IMG/VR virus record: IMGVR_UViG_3300049217_000071
Location: 62,001 to 126,000 of that record
Direction: 5' to 3' (one strand)
DNA: 64,000 bases
Each line of letters begins with the position of its first letter. Within the stretch, counting starts at the first letter, position 1. Positions 3,014 through 48,238 of this stretch are shown here, piece after piece. Both the position numbers and the translations under genes were made by a program. The notes under the pieces were generated by a model that worked only from the letters and a program-made list of their open reading frames with translations, searched no databases and had not been told where the DNA came from.

Positions 3014-3303
3014 TGAAAACGGAATTTCCCAAGCTCCTCAAGGATATGCGTATCGCCCTGAACCCAGAGTTCAAGACTATTGTAAGCGACTCTACTCTGA
3101 CTGCCGATCAGTTTGACAAAGCCCTAATGGAAATTGAGGCCAAACAAGAGCAGATGGTCAAAGACCACGGATATACTCAGGAAGAGTTCTCTCAACTCAT
3201 CAAGGAACACTTCATTGATTTCTCCTCAACTAATCCTGACGAGTGGGTCATTAAGCTTGATACCGAGAATCCTCAGATCATTATTGGTTCCAAGACCAGC
3301 TAA
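3010..3303 (+). CDS. hypothetical protein
   Basis: tightly packed ORF. Confidence 0.6.
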   Translation: MMKTEFPKLLKDMRIALNPEFKTIVSDSTLTADQFDKALMEIEAKQEQMVKDHGYTQEEFSQLIKEHFIDFSSTNPDEWVIKLDTENPQIIIGSKTS

Positions 3304-3330
3304 TATCGTGATATATAGACTCAGCACCAT

Positions 3331-3405
3331 CGTGGTGTAGCATATTGGATGTGCGGCCGTCTCATAAGCGGTTATGAGTGGGTTCGATTCCCACCATCAC
3401 GACCA
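3331..3405 (+). tRNA. tRNA-Met/Ile2 (CAT)
   Basis: CGTGGTG/CATCACG acceptor, gccgt-ctCATaa-gcggt, GTTCGA T-loop, CCA; paired 1-72 so not an initiator. Confidence 0.9.
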
Positions 3406-3410
3406 TCTCT

Positions 3411-3851
3411 TTATTGTTTAGCAATTCCTGTGCCTGGTGTTGGTTGTTGTTGAGTACCTGGCTCATACTTCAACGACAAGGTAAGGTTGCTGTAGCTAAT
3501 GGTTTCGCCATTCTTTTGAGATGGAAATAGCTCAATATATTTTTCCAGGTAAGCCTTGACTTGTTCAGACAGTGGGGCGTATTTGCCCGTCAATTCAGGT
3601 GGATCTACACCCGGAGGAGAGACGGAAATAGTACTACCATCTCTTGTCACGTTGATAGCTAAGGCTGCTTGGTCAGTTGCCAGCATCTGCATAAACGGCA
3701 TAATCCCTAGTGATTTGACGCCAGAAGCGTGGGCCACTGAATCCTGAATATGCTGTTGAATCTCATCTTTGAGCGTGTTAGCATCAATACTGGCGTATTT
3801 CTTACGGAATTGCGAGGCAAGCTTGAAGAGGCGTAGTTCAGACTTTTTCAT
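3411..3851 (-). CDS. hypothetical protein
   Basis: 146-aa ORF; N-terminal LFKLASQFRKKYA. Confidence 0.7.
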   Translation of the reverse strand: MKKSELRLFKLASQFRKKYASIDANTLKDEIQQHIQDSVAHASGVKSLGIMPFMQMLATDQAALAINVTRDGSTISVSPPGVDPPELTGKYAPLSEQVKAYLEKYIELFPSQKNGETISYSNLTLSLKYEPGTQQQPTPGTGIAKQ

Positions 3852-3891
3852 ACTCGTATATCATTTTAGTGGTATATAGGATACCGACAAT

Positions 3892-3966
3892 GGGCGATTA
3901 ACTCAGCGGTAGAGTGCAACCCTTACAAGGTTGAAGTCGGGGGTTCGAATCCCTCATCGCCTACCA
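3892..3966 (+). tRNA. tRNA-Val (TAC)
   Basis: cloverleaf, caacc-ctTACaa-ggttg, CCA. Confidence 0.95.
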
Positions 3967-4072
3967 GATTTAGTGATAGTTAGGGGAGCCCCCTGTTGAT
4001 AGTTGCGATTCGACTAAGCTATCTGAACACGAAATCCTGTTGCCATGTCGAATAGGCGCAGGTCACTAGATT
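3967..4072 (+). ncRNA. candidate structured RNA (closing stem, two hairpins, 7-bp kissing loops)
   Basis: 3968-3977 pairs with 4062-4071; loop ATTCGAC (4008-4014) complementary to loop GTCGAAT (4047-4053). Confidence 0.55.
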
Positions 4073-9974: not shown

Positions 9975-10153
9975 TGAAAACTTTAGAACACAACCTTTAT
10001 ATTGAAGTGCAAGACACTCCTGATGGTCAAAAGATCCTGGATGAGCTAGTGGTTTGGCTCTGTGGATTGAAACACGAATATCCTAAAGCATATCTCAATG
10101 GTTGGATCGGCCCAGTCAAAGAGACTAAGAAGAAGTCCAAAAAATCAAAATGA
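9974..10153 (+). CDS. hypothetical protein (59 aa, below the ORF-track cutoff)
   Basis: MKTLEQHLY...KKSK*; stop overlaps the stub ATG at 10150. Confidence 0.6.
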   Translation: MKTLEHNLYIEVQDTPDGQKILDELVVWLCGLKHEYPKAYLNGWIGPVKETKKKSKKSK

Positions 10154-10938: not shown

Positions 10939-11343
10939 ATGAAATCCATAGGGAAGCTAGTGTACAATCCTCGTAGTCATCTAGGATCGAGTGAAAAGTG
11001 GGCCATTTTGGCATGTGATGATGAGATTTCCAAATACTACAGGCATCTCTTCACCAAGGACTACCCGTATTTGAACGGAGAGCGAGTGGGCAAGCTGACC
11101 CGTCCGGTGTGGGGAACTCACATTTCTATCATTCGAGGGGAATATATTCCGAACTTCAAGCTATGGGGTCTGGACGCCAACAAGGTGATCGAGTTCACTT
11201 ACGAAGGTGGCGTTATAGACAACGGTGAATACTACTGGTTGAAAGTCAACTGTCCTTATATTGGAGATTTGCGCGAGAAGTATGGGTTGAAGAGGGAGCC
11301 GAAATTTGGTTTCCATTTGACTATCGGGAGAACCACAGAATGA
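10939..11343 (+). CDS. putative 2H phosphoesterase
   Basis: two Hx[ST] motifs: THISII and FHLTIG. Confidence 0.65.
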   Translation: MKSIGKLVYNPRSHLGSSEKWAILACDDEISKYYRHLFTKDYPYLNGERVGKLTRPVWGTHISIIRGEYIPNFKLWGLDANKVIEFTYEGGVIDNGEYYWLKVNCPYIGDLREKYGLKREPKFGFHLTIGRTTE

Positions 11344-44051: not shown

Positions 44052-44678
44052 ATGAAATTATTCAATACTGTTCAAGAGCTATGGTCGTATTGCGCCTTTT
44101 GTCCCCTCTGCGAGGATATTTGCCGTGACGTCATTGTAGATGTAGCGATGGACTCCGATTTCAATATTGAGACCTCTTTCGAGAAGAAGGATCAATTCCT
44201 TCACATAACTTGTGAGAGGCGTTTGTGGAGAAGCCGCCCCATCGATAAGAAAAAGAACAGGACGCACGAAACTGTTTGTAAGTATGTGATTGATTGCACG
44301 AAAAACACTTTCACGCTGTTATCTCAACCCGATACGCCAGAACAGGCATCCTGTTATATACAGAGTATGTGTGAGTCATGCGCTAACACTTTTACTTACG
44401 GTGCAGATATGGAACTGTATGCACATAGTCAAAAGGTTTTCAATATTGGGTTGGAGCGGGAGTCAATTGAATTGTCTGATGACACCCACAGATATGAACT
44501 CAACTACTATTACAGCAATGACACGCCACCAGGCGTAGGTATGTTTGTTTACCGCAGTCTTTTAGATGCGGAAGGCGATCCCGACAATTTGGGCATCAAA
44601 CTTCCTCTCATGGAATTAGATTTCTACGACCCTAAGAAAGTCATCAACAAACTCAAGACACTTATTCTTTTCAGCTAA
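44052..44678 (+). CDS. CxxC protein with C-terminal KLKTLILFS
   Basis: shared C-terminus. Confidence 0.7.
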   Translation: MKLFNTVQELWSYCAFCPLCEDICRDVIVDVAMDSDFNIETSFEKKDQFLHITCERRLWRSRPIDKKKNRTHETVCKYVIDCTKNTFTLLSQPDTPEQASCYIQSMCESCANTFTYGADMELYAHSQKVFNIGLERESIELSDDTHRYELNYYYSNDTPPGVGMFVYRSLLDAEGDPDNLGIKLPLMELDFYDPKKVINKLKTLILFS

Positions 44679-44687
44679 GGAGTTCCT

Positions 44688-44891
44688 ATGTCTACCTTCC
44701 ACGAAGCCAATCAAGTCCGTCTGGCACTCAAGATGAAACTTTCTCAACACGCTTGGTATAACAGCAGCGTTGTCCTGTCTTCCGAAGATGGATATAGCAT
44801 TCTGGTCCGGGTCAAGCAGGTCGACAATAAAGTCCGTAAGATTATCGCACCCGTCATAGACGGTGTTAGTATAAAGGTAGAAGGCGAATGA
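44688..44891 (+). CDS. hypothetical protein
   Basis: AAGGAG RBS. Confidence 0.65.
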   Translation: MSTFHEANQVRLALKMKLSQHAWYNSSVVLSSEDGYSILVRVKQVDNKVRKIIAPVIDGVSIKVEGE

Positions 44892-45541
44892 CACTCAAGA
44901 TAGTAGCAATAAGTGATACGCACTCTCATCACCGCAAGCTGAGCTTGCCCGATGGGGATGTTCTCATTCATGCCGGAGATATCTCCTGGCGTGGCGAGCT
45001 TCCTATCATCGAGGACTTTGCTGCCTGGTTGAAAGAGCAGCCGCACAAGAAGAAGATTGTTATCTTCGGTAATCACGAGATCGGTTTTCAGCACGGCTAT
45101 AAGAGGCCGATGGCTATCAAATTGATCCAAGACGCCGGTGCCATCTATTTGGAGAACAGTGGCGTGGAGATTGACGGCGTCAATTTCTATGGTTCCCCAG
45201 TGCAGCCGTGGTTCCACGATTGGGAGTGGAACTATCAGCGAGGTCCCGAGATTGCAGCAATTTGGGCCCAGATTCCTACAAATACCAACGTGCTCATCAC
45301 CCACGGCCCGCCCTATCTAATTATGGACGAAGCTCCTCGGGGAGTCTTTGATCACGAGAATGTAGGTTGTAAAGACTTGATGAACAGACTGGGAGATTTG
45401 CCCGATCTGAAAGCTCATGTCTTTGGTCATATCCACGCAGGCTATGGCACCCGACAGATCGGTCCTTGCCTCTTTGTCAATGCCGCTTCCTGCACGGAAC
45501 AATATGCGGCCACTAACCCACCCATTGTATTCGAGGTGTAA
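44888..45541 (+). CDS. calcineurin-like metallophosphoesterase
   Basis: SDTH, HAGD, GNHE, THGPP, FGHIH. Confidence 0.93.
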   Translation: MTLKIVAISDTHSHHRKLSLPDGDVLIHAGDISWRGELPIIEDFAAWLKEQPHKKKIVIFGNHEIGFQHGYKRPMAIKLIQDAGAIYLENSGVEIDGVNFYGSPVQPWFHDWEWNYQRGPEIAAIWAQIPTNTNVLITHGPPYLIMDEAPRGVFDHENVGCKDLMNRLGDLPDLKAHVFGHIHAGYGTRQIGPCLFVNAASCTEQYAATNPPIVFEV

Positions 45542-45542
45542 G

Positions 45543-45974
45543 ATGAAAGTCAAGCCTAAAGAAATTATGGTAGTGCTACCGGCTGCTCATCTCTTCCAGT
45601 CCGAGGATGAGATGGCCAGCTTTGCTTCCGCTATCAATACCATCATTCACGGCAAGGTCAAGATCAAATACGAAGTGCTGGGCCAATTGGGCGGCCAGTA
45701 TGTCGGGCTCTTCTACATTCAGAGGAACAACGAGTCGCAGGAAATTCACGATGAGTTTGTTCGTCTGATTGAACAGGAAGAGATTAGAGATCATTTTTCG
45801 GGGGAAGAATTGCCGGAAGATGATGAGATGCAAGTTTCAGATGCCGGCGCCACCATATTTCATCGAATCTGTCCTGACTGTGATGCATTGAGTATGCTAC
45901 ACCAAAAAGGTCTTCAGCACTGTGAGTGTGGTGAAGATTGGGTGAATGGCCGATGTGAATCTCGAAGGGAATAA
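45543..45974 (+). CDS. hypothetical protein with C-terminal Zn ribbon
   Basis: CPDC...CECG. Confidence 0.6.
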   Translation: MKVKPKEIMVVLPAAHLFQSEDEMASFASAINTIIHGKVKIKYEVLGQLGGQYVGLFYIQRNNESQEIHDEFVRLIEQEEIRDHFSGEELPEDDEMQVSDAGATIFHRICPDCDALSMLHQKGLQHCECGEDWVNGRCESRRE

Positions 45975-45980
45975 ATCAAA

Positions 45981-46025
45981 ATGATTGTTGCATTCACGGG
46001 TCATCGACCTGACAAGCTGGCGTAA
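45981..46025 (+). pseudogene. orphaned N-terminal stub of the SLOG/YspA gene
   Basis: MIVAFTGHRPDKLA* vs MIVAFTGHRPEKIGG. Confidence 0.93.
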
Positions 46026-46045
46026 GCCGCGATATATACCTTTGT

Positions 46046-46750
46046 ATGAAGGCAACCGTAGAAAAAGTCATCCAAACTTATCTTGAAGTAAAAAGTATCC
46101 GTAAAGCCGCCGAATTGACAGGCTATTCAAAATCTGGTGTTCAGCATTTGTTGACGACCAATAATGTCGCCTTGTTTCCACGCAGCAGGGGTGGGGCCGA
46201 AAATTCTTCTCGCAAAGCCATTTTGGATTTGGACGCTTCTAATCCAAGAAGGTTAGTTCGTAATACCGGCTATATGACGGATTTATACATTGACAAGAAG
46301 ATGTCAGTCCCTGAAATTGCTCTCCAATTAGGAATAAGTACCGCAACAGTTTTTACTGGTTTAGAACGGTGTGGCATTGCATCAAGAACAATAGAAGAAG
46401 CATTGACCGGTAAGCCAAGGCCAGCCTCACAAGGATCCAAAAACCATAACTGGAAAGGTGGACTATCTGGCTGGAGGAAACTGGCCCGTGGTAGGCTCAA
46501 CGAACATTTTGTTCGCCCAATAATGAAACGAGATAACTTCTCCTGTCAGTGGTGTGGCTCGAAGAAGAATATCGTAGTTCATCACCACAAACGCTCGTTT
46601 ATGGAGATTGTCAATCTAGTCAGACAACAGTGTGATGAAAAAGATATAGACCAGTTTGTCAAACTCATAATTAGCGAACATTCATTAGATGACGGAATTA
46701 CGCTTTGCAAGAAGTGCCACGACAATCACCATAAGGAACACGGGAAATGA
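46046..46750 (+). mobile_element. free-standing HNH endonuclease gene
   Basis: two HTH, NHNWKGG, RDNF.CQWCG, VHH, GITLCKKCH...H. Confidence 0.9.
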
Positions 46751-47220
46751 TAGTAGCTTTTACGGGTCATAGGCCAGAAAAAATCGGAGGATACAGACTC
46801 CCTAACCCCACTTACATTCACGTCTGTCAAGAGATCGAAAAGACTCTGACGGAACTCCGGCCCTATATGGTCATCACGGGAATGGCTTTGGGTGTCGACC
46901 AATGGGCAGCTAACATAGCCCGTAAGATGAAGATTCCTTATATCGCTGCCATTCCTTTCGAGGGCCAAGAGTCCAAATGGCCTAAGCGGAGTCAGCGGAC
47001 TTATCGCGCTCTCCGTAAGCTGGCTATGGGTGAAACCATTGTCAGCCCTGGAGAGTACTCGGTAGAGAAGATGCAGATCCGTAATCAGTGGATGGTAGAT
47101 AACGCGGATGCCGTCATTGCCGTGTGGGATGGAACTCGGGGTGGAACCAAGAACTGTATTGAGTATGCTAAATCTCAGAACAAGCAAATTTATTACATTG
47201 ACCCGCGCCTTGACAAGTGA
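46747..47220 (+). CDS. SLOG superfamily YspA/DUF1273 protein
   Basis: FTGHRP, GMALGVDQWAA, PF.GQ...W, RN.WMVD, VWDG..GGT.NC..YA. Confidence 0.9.
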   Translation: MIVAFTGHRPEKIGGYRLPNPTYIHVCQEIEKTLTELRPYMVITGMALGVDQWAANIARKMKIPYIAAIPFEGQESKWPKRSQRTYRALRKLAMGETIVSPGEYSVEKMQIRNQWMVDNADAVIAVWDGTRGGTKNCIEYAKSQNKQIYYIDPRLDK

Positions 47221-47429
47221 ATTGGTGGTAATTATGCTCTTACAACCGTGCCACGAATTATCCGACTTTCCAGTGAAGCTTTGGTGGCCTGATACTGTTG
47301 TAGGTGCACTGATATGCACTGTGATATGTCTGGTGATTATTACGGTGATTTGGGCACTGGCCGCTCTCTATATAAAGATTTTCGATCTCTAAGGTTGGCA
47401 ATATCGAGATATATTAGAGACACAGGAAT

Positions 47430-47513
47430 GCCTATGTGGCGGAATGGCAGACGCGCTCGTCTCAAACACGAGTCCCGAAAGGGGTGTGGGTTCGACTCCC
47501 ACCATCGGTACCA
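47430..47513 (+). tRNA. tRNA-Leu (CAA)
   Basis: ctcgt-ctCAAac-acgag, long variable arm, CCA. Confidence 0.93.
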
Positions 47514-47514
47514 A

Positions 47515-47775
47515 TCATTTCAGGTTCTTGTAAGTCTTGATTCCCCTTCGTAGCAGTATTCTTCCCAATGTAGAATTGGTGATTTCGTTCTCAAAGAACT
47601 CTTCGTTGATATTATTGATGTCTTCTAAATCTGAAGCACTTACTCTAATGTTGAGCTGATAGGTATAAGTGTATCCATCATTGGCGGGAAAGCCAGGATG
47701 TCCTGGAAATCGTTTTCCATAACCATCACTGTAGCCGTCATTATCAACATTGTATATGTGTTTGTTTTTAGGCAT
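47515..47775 (-). CDS. possible ribbon-helix-helix DNA-binding protein
   Basis: AAGGAGG RBS; LNIRVS..D...I.......STLGR.LL..G. Confidence 0.5.
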   Translation of the reverse strand: MPKNKHIYNVDNDGYSDGYGKRFPGHPGFPANDGYTYTYQLNIRVSASDLEDINNINEEFFENEITNSTLGRILLRRGIKTYKNLK

Positions 47776-47850
47776 TTAGCCTCCTTGTTAGTTTCGTTAG
47801 GCTCGTTAGCTTTCCTACTCATAACTCTTTATTGATAGATCCGGTGCAAA

Positions 47851-48238
47851 ATGGGTGATGTGCAAGTTTATAAGCTGGTGCTCCAGGTGAGCCCAAGTTC
47901 TCGGATGACTTCGAGGTGGTCAAGAAAGCTGTTCTGCAAGTAACGGATATCAAGACTAACCGCAACAAATACTACGCTATTGAGCTGCACTCCAACAAAG
48001 ACAAGTACCGTGTCTTCACTCATTATGGCCGCACGGATGATTTGGATAGCAATCCTAATGCAGGTGCCCGAGAGGGAAGATGAAAAACTACTCCAATATT
48101 ACTTATGGGCTGAAAGAGCCGCCGGCCGGATATGATAGTTGCCACGGAGTTAGAGGAACGCAGTTCGCAGATGATGAGTTTGTTATCTATTCTCATGACC
48201 AGCAAAAGCTGGAATATTTGGCGGAATGCACTTATTGA
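47851..48238 (+). pseudogene. second PARP gene, frameshifted and internally deleted
   Basis: WGR part: TDIKTNRNKYYAIELH...VFTHYGRT; 48080-48238: GYDSCHG...DDEFVIY...QQKLEYLAE (PARP catalytic end). Confidence 0.8.

Follow-up and report, generated by a model that had tools for sequence, protein, structure and literature searches.

How does the start of a conserved phage gene come to be present twice, on either side of an endonuclease gene, and how does the gene remain intact? This question is raised by a locus in a 64,000-nucleotide stretch of the 268 kb IMG/VR virus record IMGVR_UViG_3300049217_000071 (hereafter, the window), where a 13-codon stub (45981-46019, + strand; MIVAFTGHRPDKL, followed by GCG TAA at 46020-46025) lies 766 nt upstream of an intact jumbo-phage YspA/YoqJ SLOG gene (46747-47220, + strand; 157 aa) that starts with MIVAFTGHRPEKI. 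Between the two lies a gene encoding a 234-aa protein that combines helix-turn-helix (HTH) modules with an HNH nuclease (46046-46750, + strand), and the TGA stop of this gene (46748-46750) overlaps the ATG of YspA as ATGA. A megablast search of region 44800-47500 against GenBank phages gave no match.

The duplication is real. The stub and the new N-terminus share 11 of 13 residues, 4 of 13 codons (ATG, ACG, GGT, CAT) and 28 of 39 nt, with 7 codons differing synonymously and 2 non-synonymously. The match exceeds chance expectation: a tblastn search of the whole window with YspA finds the stub as the only other hit (E = 0.002), and an unbiased scan of all ORF ends in the window identifies only this case and one other. 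The original prediction, that a YspA N-terminus is duplicated around an HNH gene, with a dead upstream copy, a working downstream start overlapping the HNH stop, a break after the TGHRP...KL codons and no intron, is supported in each element, with three refinements. First, the stub is the native copy and the working N-terminus is the imported one. Second, the apparent recoding is no greater than ordinary divergence between YspA lineages that are about 70% identical (for example, two of the compared loci, L002 and L003, also share only 4 of 13 codons), and looks like foreign origin plus changes clustered at the junction rather than a special recoding of every codon. Third, the ATGA overlap, from which translational coupling to the endonuclease had been proposed, is common for whatever gene precedes YspA in these genomes and so is not peculiar to the endonuclease.

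The native left flank is marked by a conserved neighbor gene (45543-45974, + strand; about 143 aa from Met43 of ORF 45417-45974), homologs of which, at 50-61% identity, lie in the same order in L002-L010 and L020, with the relatives starting at MKVKPKE or MNIKPKE. The stub starts 7 nt after the stop of this gene and is still preceded by its own Shine-Dalgarno-like AAGGG. It equals the family consensus MIVAFTGHRPDKL, and 58 of 120 homologs have exactly MIVAFTGHRPDKLGGYKL. The stub is followed by a 26-nt leader (46020-46045, + strand), the first two codons of which terminate the stub reading frame; the leader contains a GATATATA motif but no Shine-Dalgarno sequence before the HNH ATG, and its left boundary is ambiguous by 1 nt because G46020 could be native. 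A scan of 45300-47600 for promoters and terminators found nothing in the leader and no terminators, so that no independent transcription unit can be claimed.

The assignment of the 234-aa protein to the HNH endonucleases rests on sequence profiles and motif. The protein matches phrog_8446 (E = 4.8e-19) and 9 further HNH PHROGs and contains a CxxC..HH..CxxCH motif (46544-46720); although it does not itself reach the Pfam HNH threshold, PF01844 is hit by 8 of 48 family members (best E = 8e-6), and residues C167, C170, H180, C221, C224 and H225 are invariant. Two HTH modules occupy residues 7-52 and 81-108, with HTH_38 detected in 35 of 48 and NUMOD1 in 3 of 48 family members. The AlphaFold model (pLDDT 87) is helical at the N-terminus, but a whole-chain Foldseek search against PDB returned only weak HTH matches (best E = 0.1) and a PDB sequence search with the family profile gave only marginal HTH hits, so no structural homolog of the nuclease is claimed. 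The dN/dS of about 0.1 between family members, together with the invariant catalytic and zinc residues, points to a functional HNH. No HNH paralogs were found in the window by tblastn or motif, and a profile search of genome contigs yielded only relatives at 38% identity or less in MAGs, so no host was identified.

A Shine-Dalgarno-like AAGGAA (46733-46738, + strand) is embedded in the last HNH codons (..HKEHGK*), 8 nt before the YspA ATG, and the HKExGK C-terminus is nearly invariant in the family. The replacement N-terminus (hereafter N'; 46747-46785, + strand) comprises 13 codons, MIVAFTGHRPEKI, in which the substitutions GAC AAG CTG to GAA AAA ATC lie right at the former target; EKI is rare in the family. 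The native body follows (46786-47220, + strand; codons 14-157 and stop), and together with N' forms the 157-aa ORF, which matches PF06908 over residues 3-152 (E = 6.6e-19, 69 bits against a cut-off of 27.7) and has 1893 homologs at E <= 1e-20, many named 'phage-like protein YoqJ'.

Is the stub the first exon of an intron-containing gene? Joining 46019 to 46786 would restore an in-frame consensus gene (MIVAFTGHRPDKL|GGY..), and HNH genes are common in phage group I introns (PMC2988022). However, an Rfam scan of 45000-48000 finds only the tRNA and no group I or II intron at E <= 10; only 26 nt lie outside the HNH ORF, with none on the 3' side, leaving no room for a ribozyme core; and a complete, Shine-Dalgarno-preceded replacement N-terminus makes splicing unnecessary. 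Furthermore, the stub is frameshifted, deleted or mutated in L036, L037, L040, L064, L065, L112, L113, L116 and L117, while N' is always intact, which would be impossible for an exon. The intron explanation is thus very unlikely and close to refuted. An intein is not supported either, given that the stub frame stops at 46023-46025, the HNH is in another frame and there is no Hint/intein Pfam hit.

Comparison with other loci shows that the arrangement is site-specific. About 18 distinct metagenomic loci carry this HNH family, with HNH identity down to 49% (49-81%), and in every one with downstream sequence, the HNH lies directly upstream of YspA. Stub remnants occur in 15 of the 18 loci and in 0 of 16 endonuclease-free YspA loci (Fisher p = 4e-7). 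The 12 stubs compared in one alignment all end after the codon-13 Leu and are followed by a collinear leader of 21-26 nt, whereas the deep-clade stubs end at the same place but have different leaders (L043/L068 after Leu13; L066 after the equivalent ..KCG). As a negative control, 63 loci holding distant HNH relatives were scanned for a duplicated head of the downstream gene, and none was found; an apparent decayed stub in L147/L148 is a chance hit inside an EF-Ts-like gene.

Which of the two copies is native is indicated by L035, the locus with the closest YspA (91-93% aa). Stub codons 8-13 match L035 at 16 of 18 nt and N' at only 9 of 18, whereas the 23 nt after the junction match at 23 of 23, with about 88% nt and 93% aa identity downstream of the junction. 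L035 contains the uninterrupted target CCTGACAAGCTG|GGAGGATACAGACTCCCT, which equals the 3' end of the window's stub joined to the window's gene body. For this locus alone, however, divergence of N' in place after insertion, rather than import, cannot be excluded, and because synonymous sites are saturated between all lineages, N' could not be traced to a donor.

Several lines of evidence suggest that the cassette is mobile. For L114 versus L115, pS is 0.40 in the HNH and 0.85 (saturated) in the YspA body, and for L037 versus L064 the values are 0.57 and 0.85, indicating that in these two pairs the cassette is younger than its host gene, although higher HNH conservation could partly reflect stronger protein constraint. 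The identity profile steps from about 87% in leader, HNH and N' to about 70% in the body, and the high-identity block in L114/L115 starts at the leader. The L114 and L115 stubs differ at 7 codons, all synonymously, as expected if each was captured from a working gene. The HNH is absent from L002-L020, and the window and L035 YspA form a 99% supported pair, the only grouping used from an otherwise poorly resolved tree (3 of 27 branches strongly supported), yet carry different endonuclease families.

These observations bear on the possibility of a single ancient insertion, or an in-place partial duplication, inherited vertically with a now domesticated or immobile HNH, such that the stub is a fossil and the copies diverged in place. 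Compatible with this view, HNH and YspA pairwise identities are correlated (r = 0.88), so that much of the history could be vertical or between close kin; the association with YspA is deep; the purifying selection on the HNH would also fit domestication; and for the window's own HNH, both genes are saturated at synonymous sites against all loci with DNA. Nevertheless, a neutral 39-nt fossil could not stay 13 of 13 consensus over that depth, yet intact stubs occur in several divergent lineages (the window, L114, L115, L043/L068 and L066). In addition, the pS of the L114 and L115 stubs resembles that of the host gene rather than the HNH, and the nearest YspA relatives of the window lack the HNH, with L035 carrying a LAGLIDADG gene and L002, L003 and L020 having none. 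We consider this scenario unlikely.

The phenomenon extends beyond one locus and one endonuclease family. The LAGLIDADG gene of L035 belongs to a LAGLIDADG_2 family, unrelated to the HNH, that shows the same architecture at the same gene, with stubs ending after codon 7 and a similar terminal AAAGGAAA; a search of IMG/VR with the LAGLIDADG protein found nothing, and its relatives came from the protein database. The second case found in the window is also a stub/HNH-like/replacement arrangement, at a different gene.

Taken together, these results are best explained by an intron-less, intein-less homing cassette (46020/21-46785; 766 nt), inserted between codons 13 and 14 of YspA and consisting of the leader, the HTH+HNH gene, the embedded ribosome-binding site and N'. 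We regard this explanation as likely, with the reservation that there are no cleavage, expression or homing data, every locus is a metagenomic contig, and no cassette-free allele of this very phage was seen. Under the proposed cycle, in a mixed infection, the HNH protein is inferred to recognize the conserved DNA encoding ..TGHRPDKL|GGY.. in a YspA allele lacking the cassette, and to cut or nick it near codon 13/14. The break would then be repaired from the cassette-bearing genome, with the stub and upstream DNA as the left homology arm and the YspA body as the right arm, copying in leader, HNH and N'; the boundaries are evident from the sequence, whereas the repair process is inferred. The recipient's own first 13 codons remain upstream as a stub that runs into a stop two codons into the leader and is then free to decay, as is seen across loci. 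The YspA ORF is intact without any splicing, and its translation from the cassette's own Shine-Dalgarno sequence and ATG, predicted to yield MIVAFTGHRPEK rather than ..PDK.., is inferred. The invaded allele is also inferred to be immune because the old site is split and the N'|body junction is altered (D11E/L13I here, a 4-codon PNKET insertion in one clade and GRPSM in another, compared with the DKLGGY consensus in 100 or more free alleles).

An alternative is that an ordinary free-standing HNH gene normally resides upstream of YspA and cuts inside its 5' end, the stub being a one-off scar of an illegitimate (non-homologous) left-hand join during break repair, because the DNA upstream of YspA is not homologous between phages; the cassette would then not be an evolved unit with a 'designed' replacement end. 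Indeed, the region between the upstream neighbor and YspA is hypervariable among relatives, and free-standing endonucleases cutting in a neighboring gene are the norm in T4 (PMC2988022). Three deep-clade loci (L042, L067 and L069) have the HNH upstream of YspA without a visible stub, and in L042 the HNH start overlaps the preceding gene, so that the ancestral state may have been a plain free-standing gene. Moreover, L066, and probably L043, carry two or three tandem stub remnants, which suggests repeated imprecise joins. Against this view, the same left junction and a collinear leader recur in 12 loci, and the high-identity block begins at the leader. Once formed, the stub provides the left homology arm, so this doubtful alternative describes the likely origin of the cassette rather than an alternative to its present behavior.

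It is also conceivable, although only as a tentative and secondary possibility compatible with the main explanation, that the stub is retained as a short upstream ORF that delivers ribosomes to the Shine-Dalgarno-less HNH start 20 nt downstream (reinitiation) and so sets endonuclease dosage. The stub keeps the original Shine-Dalgarno sequence and ATG of YspA, and in several loci a short upstream ORF ends 3-20 nt before the HNH ATG. However, many loci have stubs without a start codon or with the frame broken (L040, L113, L116, L117).

Homing endonuclease genes are thought to enter essential or conserved coding DNA in only a few ways: they ride in a self-splicing intron or intein or, rarely, split the gene into two working pieces, and otherwise stay intergenic. 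The locus described here and its roughly 20 relatives suggest a simpler, DNA-level solution in phages, namely, carrying a replacement for the few displaced codons plus a ribosome-binding site, which would explain how an endonuclease can target the most conserved, and therefore most reliably present, stretch of a gene without any catalytic RNA or protein. The system offers a natural series of fresh to decayed stubs that date invasions, shows two endonuclease families competing for overlapping sites, predicts a well-defined target (…CTG|GGA…) for a new HTH-HNH enzyme, and flags short 'orphan' ORFs next to nuclease genes as displaced gene heads and the start of the working gene as imported. More broadly, and with only slightly better than even likelihood, such 'gene-head replacement' cassettes could be a third general way, besides introns and inteins, for phage homing endonucleases to live inside conserved coding sequence. 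On this reading, the cassettes are active, site-specific and turn over quickly, with unrelated HNH and LAGLIDADG families competing for the same 40 bp of one gene and the same design recurring at other genes, even with the endonuclease on the opposite strand; they would be an unrecognized source of mosaic gene starts and mis-annotated short ORFs in large phage genomes.

Among known systems, intron- or intein-borne homing endonucleases, such as I-HmuI in SPO1 and I-TevIII in T4 nrdB, share a precise, conserved insertion site inside a highly conserved coding stretch, targeting of the uninterrupted allele (inferred here) and preservation of host gene function. Here, there is no RNA or protein splicing element, and preservation is achieved at the DNA level, by duplicating the displaced codons. 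In intron-less homing by the free-standing endonucleases of T4-like phages (SegA-G, MobA-E; PMC2988022), as in the present case, a free-standing gene lies between or next to conserved genes, is patchily distributed among relatives and spreads by break repair with co-conversion of flanks, with immunity coming from sequence differences at the target (spread by break repair and immunity being inferred in the present case). However, the T4 elements sit in intergenic DNA, with cleavage sites often hundreds of bp away, or split the gene into two working polypeptides (Aeh1 nrdA/mobE, T4 gene 60/mobA), whereas here the insertion point is discrete and inside the ORF, and the gene is neither split nor spliced but re-headed by a replacement 5' segment.

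The closest analogs, rather than relatives, are the mobile ORF elements of fungal mitochondria that carry a duplicated gene end, as in Allomyces macrogynus atp6 (Paquin et al. 1994, as cited in PMC3630166) and Glomus atp6, atp9, cox2 and nad3 (Beaudet et al. 2013, PMC3630166); searches of open-access papers found no description of this arrangement in phages. In the mitochondrial elements, too, an endonuclease ORF inserts inside a protein-coding gene without an intron or intein and brings a divergent copy of the displaced gene end, which becomes the working one, while the native end is left beside it as a remnant that matches close relatives better than the inserted copy does (91-98% versus 64-81% in Glomus; 16/18 versus 9/18 nt here). 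The present case is the mirror image, in that the 5' end rather than the 3' end is replaced, and it is found in dsDNA jumbo phages rather than organelles. The endonuclease is an HNH (plus a separate LAGLIDADG_2 family) rather than a LAGLIDADG/GIY-YIG fused in phase with the host gene, and is a separate ORF whose last codons supply the ribosome-binding site of the host gene and whose stop overlaps its start, with a duplicated piece of only 7-13 codons.

The window derives from a 268-kb jumbo-phage contig (IMGVR_UViG_3300049217_000071) and is rich in tRNA genes, 17 of which were detected in the window. Inspection of the sequence confirmed the original prediction that the N-terminus of a SLOG/YspA gene is duplicated around an HNH gene. 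On the + strand, a conserved small gene ending at 45974 is followed by a 13-codon ORF head at 45981-46019 (MIVAFTGHRPDKL), hereafter the stub, which runs into GCG TAA, then by 20 further non-coding bases, a 234-aa ORF at 46046-46750, and a 157-aa ORF at 46747-47220 that begins MIVAFTGHRPEKIGGY and whose ATG overlaps the preceding stop as ATGA. The 157-aa protein is a YspA/YoqJ SLOG protein (PF06908, 69 bits), whereas the 234-aa protein contains two helix-turn-helix (HTH) modules and a zinc-type HNH nuclease, as indicated by a match to phrog_8446 (E = 4.8e-19), the presence of the nuclease motif, and PF01844 hits in 8 of 48 family members. The two N-terminal copies share 11 of 13 residues, 4 of 13 codons and 28 of 39 nucleotides, and the stub is the only other YspA-like hit in the window (E = 0.002). 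The overlapping HNH/YspA start was evidently missed by the gene caller; the public gene call for the source contig gives only a 117-aa YspA product starting at Met41 (P0064), an annotation consequence of this architecture.

The arrangement is not that of an intron or an intein. An Rfam scan in permissive mode detected only the downstream tRNA-Leu, only 26 bases lie outside the HNH ORF, so that there is no room for a ribozyme, and the stub frame ends in a stop, with the HNH located in another frame. The strongest argument is comparative: in related loci, the stub is frameshifted, internally deleted or lacks a start codon, while the downstream copy is always intact (an exon could not decay in this manner).

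The arrangement is a trait of the HNH family, with a fixed insertion point. The HNH has about 50 homologues of almost the same length, at 49-81% identity, and DNA was recovered for about 18 distinct loci. In every locus with downstream sequence, the next gene is YspA, and the HNH stop overlaps the YspA start in all but one locus, where the two are separated by a single base. Fifteen loci retain a recognizable remnant of the first codons of YspA just upstream of the HNH. In the 12 loci that were aligned across this region, the remnant ends after the codon-13 leucine and is followed by a collinear 21-26-nt leader before the HNH ATG, whereas the stubs of the deep-clade loci L043/L068 and L066 end at the same place but have different leaders. 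By contrast, no stub was found in 16 distinct YspA loci without an endonuclease (Fisher p = 4e-7) or in 63 loci around more distant HNH relatives. In another locus, L017, a 167-aa ORF (3501-4004) directly upstream of YspA and overlapping its start shows a sequence pattern reminiscent of HNH_3/AP2-type phage endonucleases (..SYSAHRLAWLY..); no stub was seen, but this ORF may represent a third endonuclease type at this site.

We next asked which of the two copies is native. The N-terminus of the YspA family is strongly conserved as MIVAFTGHRPDKLGGYKL; the stub is this consensus, whereas E11 and I13 of the working copy are rare. The closest YspA is P0057, encoded at locus L035, with 91% protein identity and about 88% nucleotide identity downstream of the junction. 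Codons 8-13 of the stub match this sequence at 16 of 18 nt, those of the working copy at only 9 of 18 nt, and the 23 nt immediately after codon 13 at 23 of 23. L035 therefore shows the uninterrupted target, which equals the stub end of the window joined to the gene body of the window, and the right end of the cassette is sharp at 46785|46786. The stub is the recipient's own gene head, and the working head probably came with the HNH, although divergence in place after insertion cannot be excluded for this locus alone. The synonymous 'recoding' is no more than normal divergence between lineages. What is special is the concentration of changes at the junction, namely, GAC AAG CTG to GAA AAA ATC in the window, a four-codon insertion (DKL-PNKET-GY) in six loci with a related PDKIT form in a seventh, and GRPSM in two loci. 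These changes are located where a site-specific nuclease would need to stop recognizing its own allele.

Several lines of evidence point to mobility of the cassette. In two pairs of loci, the cassette is younger than the host gene: the HNH genes of L114 and L115 show pS of 0.40, while the YspA bodies are saturated (pS 0.85), and L037 and L064 show 0.57 against 0.85. The nucleotide identity between L114 and L115 is about 87% across leader, HNH and replacement head and about 70% in the gene body, and the sequences are unalignable further out. The stubs of these two loci differ at 7 of 14 codons, all synonymously, as expected if each stub was part of a working gene until it was displaced by a separate invasion. 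Furthermore, the YspA of the window pairs with that of L035 at 99% support, yet L035 carries a different endonuclease. Against a purely horizontal picture, HNH and YspA divergences are correlated (r = 0.88), and among the relatives with retrievable DNA none was close enough for a synonymous-site test of the window's own HNH. The dN/dS of the HNH is about 0.1, so the enzyme is kept functional.

The same layout is found with an unrelated endonuclease family. L035 carries a 240-aa LAGLIDADG_2 gene (3242-4004) in the same place, again with the ATGA overlap, and upstream of it lies a 7-codon stub (MIVSFTG, followed by unrelated codons). This family includes 20 homologues, and three further members (57-69% identity; L118:1950-2708, L119 and L120) have the same layout, with stubs ending after codon 7 (..FTG|N..), one of which is decayed. 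Two endonuclease families thus appear to target sites 18 nt apart in the same gene head, and both end in codons that spell an AAGGA-type ribosome-binding site for YspA. An unbiased scan of the window identified one more case of this design at a different gene. A 16-codon stub, MKSLGKLVYSPRTHLK (ATG at 10150), lies upstream of the working gene at 10939-11343, which starts MKSIGKLVYNPRSHLG and is 2H-SAK phosphoesterase-like (PF22547, E = 6e-5); the two heads share 12 of 16 residues and 5 of 16 codons. Between them, on the minus strand, is an HTH + HNH-like ORF (10193 to about 10900). Here too, the stub matches the family consensus (..SPRTHL..) whereas the working head deviates (NPRSHL), and none of 23 IMG/VR relatives has a stub.

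The genomic neighborhood of YspA is itself conserved. In the window (44052-47513) and in loci L002-L010, L020, L035-L037 and L113-L120, it includes a 208-aa protein, a 67-aa protein, a calcineurin-like phosphoesterase, a small protein, YspA, a small membrane protein and tRNA-Leu, with NADAR, PARP and acetyltransferase genes located nearby in relatives. This looks like an NAD/ADP-ribose-related module of jumbo phages. The stretch just upstream of YspA is hypervariable and holds different small genes in each phage. Downstream of YspA, the window contains a remnant of a PARP-like gene (47916-48238), in which a 55-aa WGR-domain head (PF05406, E = 1e-7) is directly followed by a 52-aa piece matching the last 40 positions of the PARP catalytic domain (PF00644, E = 0.002). 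The closest relative, L035, has an intact 468-aa WGR-PARP_reg-PARP gene at the same place, and the window therefore carries an internal deletion of roughly 1.1 kb.

Taken together, these observations support and extend the original interpretation. The architecture, the insertion site and the comparative evidence are strong, whereas nuclease activity and homing are inferred from the homing paradigm (PMC2988022) rather than demonstrated. Under this inferred scenario, the empty site is cleaved near codon 13/14 and repaired from a cassette-bearing genome, with the stub and upstream DNA and the gene body serving as homology arms; the altered junction confers immunity; and YspA is translated from the start supplied by the cassette. 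The likely origin is a plain free-standing HNH upstream of YspA, as still seen in the deep-clade locus L042. The first transfers of such a gene into genomes with unrelated upstream DNA would have been sealed illegitimately on the left, stranding the recipient's gene head. Two or three tandem stub remnants lie upstream of the HNH in L066 (2672-2772) and probably L043 (2895-2970); in L066, MRVMVTGHRPQKCG is followed by LTGHHPPKL and then GHQPPKV, and L043 has a possible second remnant after its intact stub. These remnants fit repeated imprecise events and may record successive invasions or local slippage.

Full-text literature searches, limited to open-access papers and hence providing only absence of evidence, yielded no phage report of this design. 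It differs from T4 intron-less homing, which is intergenic or splits the gene (PMC2988022), and from intron or intein carriage. The nearest described system is the mobile ORF element of fungal mitochondria, which inserts in atp6, atp9, cox2 or nad3 with a foreign duplicate of the 3' end of the gene and leaves the native end as a remnant (PMC3630166). The phage case is the mirror image of this element at the 5' end, with different nuclease families, a separate and translationally linked ORF, and a very short duplicated piece.
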